From Zygophlyctis sp. KS116 (Eukaryota > Fungi > Chytridiomycota), in assembly GCA_054661495.1 (NCBI GenBank), contig BAAFSQ010000002.1, forward strand, positions 86,162-118,161: DNA of 32,000 bases, given 5' to 3'. How positions within the stretch are numbered: the first letter of the stretch is position 1; each line of letters starts with the position of its first letter. A model generated the notes under the pieces. That model was not told where the DNA came from, searched no databases, and was given only the letters and a program-made list of their open reading frames with translations. Of the stretch, positions 23,682-32,000 are shown piece by piece. Position numbers and translations under genes: made by a program.

Positions 23682-25044
23682 ATGGACTCGGGTGGCACTT
23701 ATACTACTTATCATACTACTGCTGATAAAGCTTTGACAGAGTCGGGACCTTTTAAAATCATGTCTAAAGATGTAGATAAAGCATACAGTAAATTATTGGA
23801 ATTTGCGATTGAATTACCAGAACAGATAACTTACTGGAATCAAATTTCAGTTTGGCGCCTTGGCACGTTTTATTCTAGTGAGGATATTAATGAGAAAATT
23901 AGAATCATCAATTCATACTATAATACTACACTCTCGATACTCGGACATTTGTATCAGCTAAAAAGGAATAATTTAAAATCCTCACAAAAAATGATAAATC
24001 TCTTAAATTCATTTTTTAGGGAATCGGACAGATCAATGAAGTCTTTAGAATCAATGACTCTTTTGGAAAAATTGGATCAATTACCTAAAATCATTCAAAA
24101 AGTTCAAAAGAAATACTTTAAGCCGTCATATTTAAAAAGAAATTGGATATCTCTACTTTTAATATCTACAATAGGAAGTTGGGCATTTATAAAAGTTTAT
24201 AAAAGTAGAAATGTTATTTATCTGGCTCTCAAGGAATTCAAAAGTACAGGATCACAATTGATTAAAGTTTGGATTTGGGAACCAATTATTAGGATTTATG
24301 AGACAATAAGGTATAAAGACTCAAAATTGAAAGTGATGGGAGCAGAGTCATTATCATCAGATTTAGATTCTTTAGAAAGAATGGTTCTGAGTTTTGCTAA
24401 AGATTCTGGAGTTTCTAATCCTCAAGATTTAAAAATGATTGGTAATAGAGCTTTAGAAGGGGATCTTAAATTCGTATTAGAATCTTATGAAGAGGATTTA
24501 AGACATCCTATTTATAGTATTAGTACTGGAGCATTAATTAGACCATTACTTATACAAATTCAAAAGGCAAAAGTTGATGCAGCACTTGCATTGTCTGCTC
24601 TGGATACTCTATTAAGATCAAATGAACTTAATTTTGCTTTTTTGGCGGTTTTACCTCTTGTTGGGGTTTTAGGAATTGGAGCAAGCTGGATGCGTGGAAG
24701 ATGGATTTATTGGTCAGGCGCAGGAAAGACAAGTCTAAAACTCTTAATGCAAAAAAGTCTAAGATCTATTGAAAAAGAATTTAACAGGAATCATCATTCA
24801 TCAAATCATATGCATCCTGAAAGTTATGGTCACATATTAGTTGACTTGTCACTGTTAAAAAGAACTGCAGCAAAGTTTTTCCACCCGATTAATTTCAAGG
24901 AATTTTTAAGTGATTTAGAGCAATTAGAAGAATGTTTTACTGACAAATGGACAGTAGGACAGGGATTAGAAACGGTATTGTAAAATATCTAAATTATAGT
25001 GTGCAAGGCTGTGTAGAACTTATCCTTGTTTAGTTCCAAGGTGA
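23682..25044 (+). CDS. NCA2: Nuclear control of ATPase protein 2 (NCA2 family)
   Basis: Motifs WIWEPI..IYETIR, SLSSDLDSLERMV, YEEDLRHPI.SI..G.LIRPLLIQIQKAKVD..LALSALD.LLRSNELNF. A terminal 25-nt intron (24975-24999) gives the C-terminus CARLCRTYPCLVPR*; without it the stop is at 24983. Confidence 0.88.
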
Positions 25045-28614: not shown

Positions 28615-29980
28615 TCAGACTACAAAAAGCATAAATGCATTAGCCAAAATATTCACAAATAATCTGGATCCGCTGCTGGCCTGCTGATTAGGGGGTACAG
28701 GTACAGACTCGGTAGAATTCTTACTTGGCTCAATATTGGATAGTTTCAAAGAAGACCACATAATCATTGAATCAATGTTGGGGTCTCTTAGATCTTGTTG
28801 TAGCGCAAATAAAGTAGTTCCATCTTGTGCAGCACCATCATTTCCAATAGGAGAATCACGTCCAGTTCCAGTATCGCCCATAATTGTGAAATCTCTCCAT
28901 GTGGTTTCTTCAGGTTTGATAAATTCAAAAGTAGATACAGCCTTCAATTTAGGATATTTTTGTAGTAATGTAGAATTCAAATATTGCCTCCACCAGCTTT
29001 GTCTCATGGCTACTCTACCAGGCTAAAATATTATTTAAAGAAGGCTTACACCAGGAGGAATAGGAGTATTTTGACCGTTTCTAACCATATGTACAGTAGC
29101 TGCAGTTTCAGTAACCATAAACGGTTTCCCAGAAGATGAATTTCCAGAATATAATTGATACAATGAGAATGCACCTTGTCCGGATAATACATTCTCAAAA
29201 AATCCAGGAGTAGGAATTTCATTATCTTCCCATGGCCACTTTGGTCCGAACCAGTAGACTGATAATCCAACCCAATCTACCCATTCATCACCTTCAAAAT
29301 TAAATAAGAGTTATACCTGGATAGTATGGAGAAAAGGGATCATCATTACTATCAACCTTTCCATCTCCATTAGTGTCCAAGGGAGTTGTAATTGCATCTA
29401 GAATCTGAATTCCTCCTTAAAATTAGAAAAGGTTCAAAATACCTCCCCATGGATAGTTTGTTCCTCCATTGGGTGCCCAGATCGCGGCTAAATTAGGAGA
29501 ATTTCCTGTTGCATCCTTGATTCTTCCAATCACTCTTTTCCAAGAGGCAATAAAAGACACAGGTTGCCGACCATACACAAACCAATTACCATTCATTTCT
29601 GATCCATATCTTAGAAATATACGATGTCCTTTCTGGATTTGAGATGCCAAGATACCAGAGACTTGACTTATTGCACCATCAGTTACGTTGTCGAAACCCT
29701 GTATCGGATATAGTGTGACATAAGCAATAGCATCGGTCCCCGAATCATCCAGTTGTTGGAAAAACTGATTCATGGCCTCAGGCTGGCAGTCTGAAGTAAG
29801 ATTAAAGTCCGATTGGAAAAACGACCATGGCTTATGGTTTACCCTTTGTATGATGGAAGTTATTGTGTCTCCGTCTAGTCGATCGTACCAAGGCCCCATA
29901 TATAGCTTACCCTCATCAGCAAACTCAAGAGGAGCCAAGGCAAATATTAAGCTGAAGAATGTGAGCAATATAAACATCAT
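28615..29980 (-). CDS. Secreted GH26-family glycoside hydrolase, possibly GPI-anchored; 3 introns
   Basis: Signal peptide MMFILLTFFSLIFA. Motifs FLRYGSEMNGNW (acid/base Glu), IWAPNG, DPFSPYYPGDEWVDWVGLS, KPFMVTETAA (nucleophile Glu), WWRQ..KYPKLKAV..FE. Ser/Pro linker followed by a hydrophobic C-terminus. Confidence 0.88.
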
Positions 29981-30057
29981 GGCGAGAGCGCAGGGTGTGA
30001 CCCCTTGTATGATCGTTATCGGTAAGTTAAAAAGATGCATCACTTATGATTTATTTC

Positions 30058-30910
30058 TCAATTCTTTCCTATAGCAGTAGGCTTGGCCTGTGTTGCCTTT
30101 TTTTTCGATGCTGTCTTTTTAGTCCCAGATGATGTCTGCGTAGAAGATGTCTTAGTCTTTTTCTTGGATGCAGACTGAGTCTTCTTATCAGATGATGTCT
30201 CAGTCTTTTTCTTGGATGCAGACTGAGTCTTCTTATCAGATGATGTCTTAGACTTTTTATGATTTAAAGTTTTACGCCATTTGGAATATAAAGAAGTCAT
30301 CGTCTCTGTCTTGGTTGCGTTAATTATACATTTGGTGCAGCCTTTTGGAATGATGCAAGATTCGTCTCCTTTTTTGCCGTAGGCATTACCTTCTGAATCA
30401 TAATCGGGATTAGTAACACGTTCAGTACAGCAGGGGAAGCCATACATTTTTCCATAGCAAAATCCTTGAACACACTTACTGCATTGTTTGGGAACAATCT
30501 AATTCATCATTAACTATAGAGAACTTACACACGATTTGTTATTTTCGGTTCCATAAGGGTAACCATTTGCATCATATTCAGGATTTGAAACAACCTTTTG
30601 GCAGCAAGGGAAACCATACAAACTGCCAATGCAGAATCCTTTATCATTGTACTTTATTAATGTATCATTTTTGACACAAGATAGGCAATCTTTTGGTACA
30701 ATCTATTATTAATGATAAGTTACGACTTACACAAGATGTGCCGTTTTCCGTTCCGTATGGGTAGCCATTCGAATCGTATTCGGGATCGGACACAGTTTTG
30801 GTACAGCATGAATAACCATTCAATTCTCCTGAGCAGAATCCTAATCCGTATACATTAGCAAGCAAAGTCAAGTTAATCACAACAACAATCAAATCAGTCA
30901 ATCGAACCAT
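30058..30910 (-). CDS. Secreted protein: 3 Cys-rich CBM10/fungal-dockerin-like repeats plus a Lys/Ser/Thr-rich tail
   Basis: Signal peptide (MVRLTDLIVVVINLTLLANVYG), then three units of GFCxGxxxG[YF]xCCxxxVxxP[ED]YDxxGxxYGxxxxxSCI[VI]PKxCxxC. Phase-0 introns at 30703-30730 and 30499-30528. Confidence 0.8.
30146..30257 (-). repeat. Coding 48-nt tandem repeat x~2.3 (KTSSDKKTQSASKKKT)
   Basis: gatgtct[t/c]ag.. recurs at 30146, 30194 and 30242 with near-identical units. Confidence 0.88.
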
Positions 30911-31178
30911 TTTCTTTCAATTTCGGACGTGTGCAAACGCGAAAGTATCGCGTCACCGTGTTTTTGGCTATAGAATATGACGTCAATGATCGGCTTCTAG
31001 AATGGTCGGATAATAATCGTATCACTGTTGCAGATTATTAGTTGATCTACCGGTTCTATGTGAATTCAAATTTCATAAAAATTTTAACCCCACAAAAAAA
31101 TATGTCGCTTGCAATTTGGGCTATGATCTACATGGACTGGTCATACGAAGAATCGATGCTTCATTGATGTTTTATTTC
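30911..31178. promoter_or_regulatory. Spacer and putative promoter of the 30910 gene
   Basis: ACGCGAAA (CGCG at 30938-30941), TCGCGTCA (CGCG at 30949-30952) and the palindrome TGACGTCA (30978-30985) lie within 75 nt of the ATG. Confidence 0.45.
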
Positions 31179-32000
31179 TTACTCCGCCACTGTTGCAGTA
31201 GGAAAAATAGTAGCTGCGGTTGAAGTCATATACACTGTGCTAGTGAAATATGTGATTTTGTCAATCACGTCAGCTTTAATCACACACTTTGTGCAGCCTT
31301 TTGGAATGATGCAAGATTCGTCTCCTTTTTTGCCGTAGGCATTACCTTCTGAATCATAATCGGGATTAGTAACACGTTCAGTACAACAGGGGAAGCCATG
31401 CATTCTTCCGTGGCAAAATCCTTGAACACAGTTTTTGCATTGCTTTGGTACAATCTAAATTATCTTAATAGTATGGATCTTACGCATGATTTTCCATTTT
31501 CAGTTCCGTAAGGGTAGCCATTTGAATCATATTCCGGATTTGAAACAACTCTTGTACAGCATGGATATCCAAACATACTTCCAATGCAAAATCCTTTATC
31601 ATTGTACTTTTTAGTTTTGGTCTTTTTAATGCATGATTTACAATTCTTTGGAACAATCTGTAGAGATTAACTGTACAGAACTTACGCAAGATTTTCCATT
31701 TTCTGTTCCGTATGGGTAACCATTTGAATCATATTCAGGATTGGTCACGACTTTCTTACAGCAAGTGAATCCGTACAATTTTCCCGTGCAGAAGCCATTA
31801 CTGGCAGTGGATGAACTATCAGTCGTGGAGGGTGTTGATTCCTTTTTAATGCATGATTTACAATTCTTTGGAACAATCTGTAGAGATTAACTGTACAGAA
31901 CTTACGCAAGATTTTCCATTTTCTGTTCCGTATGGGTAACCATTTGAATCATATTCAGGATTGGTCACGACTTTCTTACAGCAAGTGAATCCGTACAATT
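31179..32000 (-). CDS. Paralogous protein with at least 4 Cys-rich CBM10/dockerin-like repeats and a Thr-rich tail; 5' end outside the window
   Basis: Same repeat unit, e.g. GFCTGKLYGFTCCKKVVTNPEYDSNGYPYGTENGKSC|IVPKNCKSC. Phase-0 introns at 31878-31905, 31658-31685 and 31455-31483. Confidence 0.8.
31622..32000. repeat. Direct duplication with 220-nt period, identical over the visible 159 nt
   Basis: 31622-31780 is identical to 31842-32000, including the 28-nt intron. 220 nt = 192 coding nt (64 aa) + 28-nt intron. Confidence 0.93.

Follow-up and report, generated by a model that had tools for sequence, protein, structure and literature searches.

Does the dockerin module of anaerobic gut fungi have relatives in other fungi, and what might such modules do there? 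The question is raised by two adjacent genes, here called A and B, at the end of a 32,000-nucleotide stretch of DNA (the window), which forms the final 32 kb of contig C2 in a 12.7 Mb assembly (1175 contigs, ~35% GC). As judged from their translations, genes A and B are tandem paralogues encoding secreted, non-catalytic proteins, built from three and at least four copies, respectively, of a six-cysteine module. By profile and embedding comparisons, this module is homologous to family 10 of the carbohydrate-binding modules (CBM10) and to the fungal dockerin, and is a divergent member of the superfamily that these two form. An earlier note, made from the letters of this DNA, had proposed the same kinship and a candidate undescribed system; the kinship held up well, whereas an undescribed family and a dockerin-scaffoldin system found no support in that form.

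Two tandem genes of six-cysteine modules

Gene A lies on the minus strand (30910-30058) and comprises three exons with a spliced open reading frame of 795 nt, corresponding to 264 amino acids. Its product has a hydrophobic, signal-peptide-like N-terminus, three six-Cys modules and a tail rich in Lys, Ser and Thr. Gene B, also on the minus strand, runs from the contig end at 32000 to 31179 and comprises, within the window, three complete modules and one cut module. Database and folding searches used single exons as queries, while the spliced translations served to read the gene order. The features of the two genes, in window positions, are as follows.

30731..30910, minus strand: gene A exon 1, with the start codon, the signal-peptide-like N-terminus and the core of module 1 to ...SC; Pfam CBM_10 match at 14.6 bits, E 0.049
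30703..30730, minus strand: gene A intron 1, 28 nt, GTAAGT..TAG, phase 0, separating the module core (..SC) from the tail (IVPKxCxxC); position the same in the orthologue on metagenome contig L015
30529..30702, minus strand: gene A exon 2, with the CxxC tail of module 1, a short linker and the core of module 2; Pfam CBM_10 match at 15.9 bits, E 0.018
30499..30528, minus strand: gene A intron 2, 30 nt, at the same within-module position as intron 1
30058..30498, minus strand: gene A exon 3, with the tail of module 2, the whole of module 3 (YGKKG variant), an 86-aa Lys/Ser/Thr-rich tail and a TGA stop
30142..30258, minus strand: tandem repeat in the basic tail of gene A, 48 nt in 2.4 copies, lengthening the Lys/Ser/Thr tail
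31906..32000, minus strand: cut exon of gene B, a module core broken by the contig end; the gene continues on contig C373
31686..31877, minus strand: gene B exon, a Ser/Thr linker and the FCTGKLYGFTCC module core, with introns at 31658-31685 and 31878-31905 on either side
31484..31657, minus strand: gene B exon, the FCIGSMFGYPCC module core, with introns at 31455-31483 and 31658-31685 on either side
31179..31454, minus strand: last exon of gene B, with the tail of the preceding module, the last module (YGKKG variant), a 31-aa Thr/Ala-rich acidic tail and a TAA stop

Modules of both genes follow the pattern C-x5-G[YF]xCC-x8-YD-x2-G-x2-YG-x3-x2-SC-I-x4-C-x2-C, and the introns of both are of the form GTAAG..AG and 28-30 nt long. 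Every module is split at one and the same place, by a phase-0 intron between the core (..SC) and the tail (I-x4-C-x2-C), so that the intron was copied along as modules were duplicated. Module 3 of gene A has KKG in place of the TEN found in modules 1 and 2. The 86 residues at the C-terminus of protein A are 28% Lys and 40% Ser plus Thr, with a pI of 10.6; the tail is shorter in its L015 orthologue (P0002). No catalytic domain was found in gene A or gene B by an exon-by-exon Pfam scan. The module pattern and the counts of three and at least four copies given in the earlier note are thus borne out by the spliced gene models and the exon on C373, as is its statement that no catalytic domain is in view.

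The first exon of gene B, which encodes the Met, the signal peptide and the beginning of module 1, was located on contig C373, at its end and adjoining an Nse4-like gene. This arrangement agrees with the gene order of a syntenic metagenome contig, L015 (ENA record GROS21-1 METAG). A word search returned five close homologues, all from metagenomes. The order on L015, i.e., Nse4, gene B, gene A, a gene like glycoside hydrolase family 26 (GH26), SNF5, cyclophilin and IF-2B, is the same as in this genome. A more distant metagenome contig, L017 (~80% protein identity), has a single four-module gene at the same locus, followed by the GH26-like gene. Since this orthologue has exactly four modules, gene B likely has four as well. 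From the module types, gene B, having the same four, appears orthologous to the single gene of L017, and gene A appears to be a copy without the second module. In one exon, A and B differ from each other about as deeply as from L017, which is compatible both with a duplication after the L017 split and with the loss of a copy in the L017 lineage.

Could the two genes be an artefact of assembly or annotation, or else decaying, functionless repeats? The assembly break does fall in the near-identical module-plus-intron repeats of gene B (window 31658-32000, C373:1-156), and at the matching place the syntenic scaffold L015 shows a stretch of N. The reading frames are intact, however, with canonical introns at conserved positions and orthologues in independent assemblies. 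Moreover, the ratios of nonsynonymous to synonymous substitution rates (Ka/Ks) of the window genes against their L017 orthologue are 0.07-0.25, so that purifying selection acts on the frames. We rejected the artefact explanation, which we regard as close to negligible.

Relationship of the module to CBM10 and the fungal dockerin

In Pfam, modules 1 and 2 of gene A matched CBM_10 (PF02013) at 14.6 and 15.9 bits, against a gathering cut-off of 23 bits; the third module had no match. CBM_10 was the sole family that the first two exons matched at E<=10. CBM18, CBM1, CBM52 and other Cys-rich carbohydrate modules, some of which the earlier note had named as possible homes for the module, gave no Pfam match in the exons of gene A at this threshold, and exon 3 gave weak matches (E>0.2) to unrelated families, all in or overlapping its low-complexity tail. 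A six-frame PF02013 scan of the whole genome found one paralogue above the cut-off (26.6 bits, contig C68), and six relatives (P0009, P0010, P0021, P0023, P0025 and P0057) matched CBM_10 at 23.8-56.7 bits. With scores on both sides of 23 bits, the family therefore straddles the Pfam threshold. The similarity proposed by the earlier note is thus present at the level of profiles, with single modules of the window below the cut-off.

More sensitive comparisons led to the same family. When module 2 was searched by its ESM features, the three nearest clusters listed were all CBM_10 (0.88-0.89; 188-194 of 256 features in common). A 19-row profile of the module (A2) was searched against 1.84 billion representative proteins and found 129 at E<=1e-3; of the 127 that were scanned, 88 carried CBM_10 at E<=1e-3. 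Two comparison sets were cut from these matches: gut-fungal dockerins (A4), a set that matches the Piromyces equi dockerin structures PDB 2J4M (9e-24) and 1E8P (2.5e-16), and bacterial repeats of the type FPxC..DxDGDGYGWENNxSCxV (A5), which match Cellvibrio CBM10 (1E8R/1QLD, 0.0022). By hhalign, the window modules aligned with the dockerins at Prob 94.6 (E 7e-8, 39 ungapped columns) and with the bacterial repeats at Prob 95.9 (E 6e-9). Searching PDB sequences with profile A1 of the module gave no match even at E<=10. Scored per domain against the module profile, proteins of named aerobic chytrids reached 34-47 bits, gut-fungal dockerins 17-24 and the bacterial repeats 10-19.

The core of the module has the same length as that of gut-fungal dockerins (Piromyces equi Cel45A, 1E8P/1E8Q; double dockerin 2J4M/2J4N; PF02013) and the same Cys framework, C-x5-G-[YF]-x-CC ... 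[WY]G-x-EN-x2-C. Dockerins also occur in tandem, as the modules of genes A and B do. Conservation in the module is highest at positions common to CBM10 and dockerin (the G[YF] aromatic, YD and YGxEN). In contrast, the conserved Trp residues of the dockerin (CW..., WGxEN and WC) are not kept in A1 and A2 when aligned with A4, being replaced by Phe or by none (CW to FC or C), by Tyr (WGVEN to YGTEN) and by Ser (WC to SC); the module also has six Cys, with an extra I-x4-C-x2-C tail, against the four of the dockerin. Both the Trp replacements and the added CxxC had been correctly read in the earlier note.

[quoted passage not shown] Three structural searches with this model returned SH3-like small beta folds throughout; such matches are not discriminating, and the fold was given no weight.

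Bacterial CBM10 (Cellvibrio japonicus Xyn10A, 1QLD/1E8R) and the FPxC..DxDGDGYGWENNxSCxV repeats share with the module the end of the core, G-x-EN-x2-SC-[IV]. Cellvibrio CBM10 presumably also has a further Cys four residues after this SC[IV] end, as the module does, and the module adds one more Cys of its own, which makes up the CxxC. Unlike the fungal modules, the bacterial forms have a single Cys where these have CC, an aromatic residue (GWGWE/GYGWE) where the six-Cys module has Thr or Lys, and no NPxYD segment. Bacterial CBM10 and the CBM10-like modules are both attached to polysaccharide-degrading enzymes. The idea that Y-P-Y of GYPYG corresponds to W-G-W of bacterial CBM10 was rejected, since the alignments with A5 place the match two residues off.

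Host lineage, partner domains and putative function

Gut fungi are anaerobic, whereas several features of this assembly point to an aerobic host. COX1 was recovered (E 1.6e-144; contig C172:6004-7341, locus L018) with two in-frame TAG codons, which suggests that this mitochondrion translates TAG as a sense codon; such a use of TAG has been reported for the mitochondria of some chytrids. The window itself contains an NCA2 gene (23682-24980; nuclear control of mitochondrially encoded ATP synthase subunits), whose best named homologue is from the aerobic chytrid Nowakowskiella (40% identity), the best overall being a metagenome protein (70%). With its best named homologue at 40%, the organism appears to have no close sequenced named relative, and its closest relatives were found in metagenome assemblies alone. 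Together with the genome size of 12.7 Mb and the ~35% GC, COX1, NCA2 and the restriction of the closest relatives to metagenomes exclude Neocallimastigomycota, in line with the earlier note, and point to an uncultured aerobic zoosporic fungus, chytrid-like and from freshwater. A ciliate or other non-fungal origin, an idea that arose from the 28-30 nt introns, was rejected in view of the standard stops (TAA ends gene B), NCA2 and the fungal or chytrid best matches.

Related modules occur in hypothetical proteins of Kappamyces (KAJ3306373), Borealophlyctis, Rhizophlyctis rosea (KAJ3050376 / UniRef100_A0AAD5SD91), Polyrhizophydium, Entophlyctis, Nowakowskiella, Cladochytrium and Blyttiomyces (Blyttiomyces helicus RKO88942), several of them above and several below the Pfam cut-off. 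For two of these proteins the name in UniRef already reads 'Carbohydrate binding module family 10 domain-containing protein'. The modules of aerobic chytrids share the core G-F-P-x-C ... P-x-[YF]-D-x2-G-x2-YG-x-EN-x-SCI with those of genes A and B. Most of them, however, have two or three Cys (GFPVC type) and lack the CxxC tail, and they occur singly, in pairs or inserted in a GH5 domain rather than in tandem non-catalytic arrays. Tandem non-catalytic arrays of the six-Cys CxxC form were seen in this genome and its metagenome kin alone.

By these profile comparisons, the CBM10/dockerin module is shown not to be confined to gut fungi: its lineage is found widely among aerobic chytrids, where Pfam thresholds hide most of it. 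CBM_10 was previously listed among the Pfam domains unique to gut fungi relative to other chytrids (Wang et al., 2019; PMC6712302), and dockerin-like modules of aerobic chytrids were not discussed in the open literature that we searched. To call the family undescribed, after the 'undescribed system' of the earlier note, would nevertheless go too far, given the related modules in many aerobic chytrids, some already auto-labelled CBM10 in UniProt. What is new here, at the level of sequence, is that an uncultured aerobic lineage has a six-Cys CxxC subtype and carries it in tandem arrays free of catalytic domains. The modules of aerobic chytrids as a whole make up a sister family below the threshold, carried on beta-mannanase-type GH5 and other carbohydrate-active partners, which counts made with Pfam or dbCAN thresholds miss.

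The recurrent partner of the module is a GH5 family domain, which in the PDB matched beta-mannanases throughout (8GF3 at 1.2e-15; 9M20, 3PZ9 and 1RH9). In this genome, as the earlier note had thought worth looking for, the module is fused to one carbohydrate-active enzyme, standing N-terminal to a GH5 beta-mannanase-type domain on contig C272 (L012:3-770, minus strand). In aerobic chytrids the GH5 partner is of the same mannanase type; in Kappamyces KAJ3306373 (P0066) and other chytrids, the module is inserted as a stretch of 45 residues into a loop of the GH5 catalytic domain, close to the N-terminus of that domain. The difference in position between the C272 and Kappamyces proteins clearly shows module shuffling. 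Other partners among the relatives are an AA12-like (TrAA12-like) domain, GH12, esterases and the GH31-associated DUF5110, and some may be expansin-like.

Even with a broad 77-row profile, only five module-bearing genes were found in the 12.7 Mb of this genome: A, B, the C272 GH5 gene, a multi-module protein on contig C862 beside a second GH5, and the C68 protein. The last carries a single module at its N-terminus, besides a Ser/Thr stalk, a Cys-containing domain and an end resembling a glycosylphosphatidylinositol (GPI) signal. In the C68 gene (L001:1489-1700), a canonical-looking 25-nt intron after ..ESC shifts the frame off the CxxC tail; for this tail (..GCIKC) to be read in frame, the intron would have to stay in the transcript and splicing would have to use another, weaker GTATTG intron.

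The reading that we prefer, with slightly better than even confidence, is that the module is a carbohydrate-binding member of the CBM10 lineage, locked by disulfides, and that proteins A and B are secreted multivalent binders, with tails that make different secondary contacts. The small module would bind carbohydrate, and its three to four copies in A and B would confer high-avidity binding to a polysaccharide or glycan surface. Candidate ligands are mannan- or cellulose-type material of a substrate or host, the fungus's own wall, another wall glycan or a glycoprotein. The proteins would then act as adhesins, cross-linkers or substrate-coating proteins rather than as enzyme-borne dockerins of a cellulosome, with the strongly basic Lys/Ser/Thr tail of A and the acidic Thr-rich tail of B providing different secondary attachment. 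Glycan binding and adhesion, which the earlier note had suggested among its possible roles, would thus be the likeliest. Secreted repeats of small disulfide-rich carbohydrate-binding modules that serve in adhesion or wall binding are known from Phytophthora CBEL (CBM1) and from chytrid CBM18 proteins, although these belong to module families unrelated to that of genes A and B, and the Pfam scan showed no sequence similarity to them.

Some points weigh against a carbohydrate-binding role. Cellvibrio CBM10 binds cellulose through a planar strip of three aromatic residues; in alignments with A5 and 1E8R, the aromatics at G[YF] and YG are kept in the module, but Thr or Lys stands where the bacterial GWGWE has its second Trp, so that the strip, on this reading, is incomplete. 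The window's own modules also score below the Pfam cut-off for CBM_10, and the ligand is a guess, for which the mannanase-type partners (GH5, perhaps GH26) give no more than a hint of mannan.

The partly kept aromatic strip would also suit structural or protective Cys-rich surface proteins, e.g., wall glycoproteins, zoospore or sporangium adhesives or host-interface effectors, in which the modules would be disulfide knots or protein-protein units and specific carbohydrate recognition would play no part. The signal peptide, the repeats and the Ser/Thr linkers of A and B would fit such proteins, as would their lack of a detectable catalytic domain and their charged or Thr-rich tails, which evolve rapidly and differ in the number of repeats. 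Conservation in the module is, however, centred on the positions of CBM10 and dockerin, and its kin carry it on glycoside hydrolases and other carbohydrate-active partners; we think this alternative unlikely.

Alternatively, the modules might be true dockerins whose partner on a scaffold protein is a cohesin-like repeat or a glycoprotein. The multi-module proteins would then be adaptors that link the GH5 bearing a module with the GPI-anchored module protein, and perhaps with the GH26-like enzyme, in a small complex on the cell surface; this would be a proto-cellulosome in an aerobic chytrid. The core is indeed isometric with that of gut-fungal dockerins over the 39 ungapped columns, which include G[YF]xCC, Y..D and [WY]GxEN; the module profile scores these dockerins above the bacterial CBM10 repeats; double or triple tandem dockerins are the rule in gut fungi (2J4M); and the C68 protein, which appears to be GPI-anchored, offers a possible anchor.

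We prefer a carbohydrate-binding role over docking for four reasons. The Trp before the last core Cys, replaced here by Ser, is lost; this residue reportedly matters for dockerin binding, a result credited to Raghothama and colleagues in 2001. In related chytrids the module lies within the GH5 catalytic domain, which suits substrate binding and not docking. The C68 protein displays its module on a GPI-anchored stalk in the manner of an adhesin. Finally, module genes are few: to our knowledge scaffoldins are confined to gut fungi, where dockerin genes number in the hundreds, whereas this genome has five module genes, one of them on an enzyme. Gut fungi have 91-316 secreted dockerin proteins per strain (bioRxiv 10.1101/2023.08.25.554870). 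With five module genes, nothing indicates a dockerin-scaffoldin system, although no search aimed at a scaffoldin was made, and we consider true dockerins decidedly unlikely.

If the module is carbohydrate-binding, the gut-fungal dockerin would be a derived use of an older chytrid module, whose first role was probably sugar binding. How the fungal dockerin arose becomes testable, as recruitment from a sugar-binding module against origin de novo or by late bacterial transfer, and a small, disulfide-locked, putative binding module is available for characterisation. A more elaborate scenario, in which the dockerin goes back to a carbohydrate-binding module of ancestral chytrids, one that aerobic chytrids still widely carry, and multi-module adaptors here tie the GH5, the GPI-anchored module protein and a GPI-anchored GH26-like enzyme to a surface scaffold as an aerobic proto-cellulosome, we regard as a long shot.

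The GH26-like neighbour and other observations

Downstream of gene A lies a third gene with a predicted secreted product.

28615..29980, minus strand: GH26-like gene, 428 aa; exons 29980-29443, 29415-29317, 29291-29050 and 29022-28615

The protein has a signal-peptide-like start and a hydrophobic, GPI-signal-like C-terminus, in which a Ser-Gly-Ser site is followed by a hydrophobic stretch (window 28615-28700); if this signal is real, the enzyme would be held on the cell surface. Two of its exons, searched separately, matched Pfam GH26 (PF02156) colinearly at 13.1 and 16.4 bits, each below the 20.2-bit cut-off, and 18 of the 30 nearest clusters by ESM features were PF02156 (0.92-0.93). A PDB search by sequence gave no match for this gene, and NCBIfam gave nothing useful for the GH26-like and GH5 pieces. 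Given the two colinear matches and the ESM clusters, it is reasonable to call the neighbour a divergent GH26, as the earlier note had done.

That note had also drawn attention to the GH26 start codon just past the gene A stop. The two genes are on the same strand, as it said, with the ATG (29980) 77 nt, not 78, past the gene A TGA. The closeness is nothing special, since spacers of 62-77 nt are the local norm: SNF5 starts 62 nt past the GH26-like stop on the same strand. L017 keeps the module gene and the GH26-like gene adjacent, together with all the surrounding synteny. The adjacency was accordingly rejected as a sign of co-regulation, the next same-strand pair being 62 nt apart and all neighbours being syntenic in relatives.

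Introns of 25-30 nt (GTAAG...AG) were seen in window 28615-32000 and in L001, L012 and L014; along with the same-strand spacers of 62-77 nt, they point to a very compact nuclear genome. An Rfam scan of the window gave no match. Elsewhere in the window, positions 1056-2943 form a GC-rich stretch (57%) with Gly/Pro-coding tandem repeats on the minus strand.

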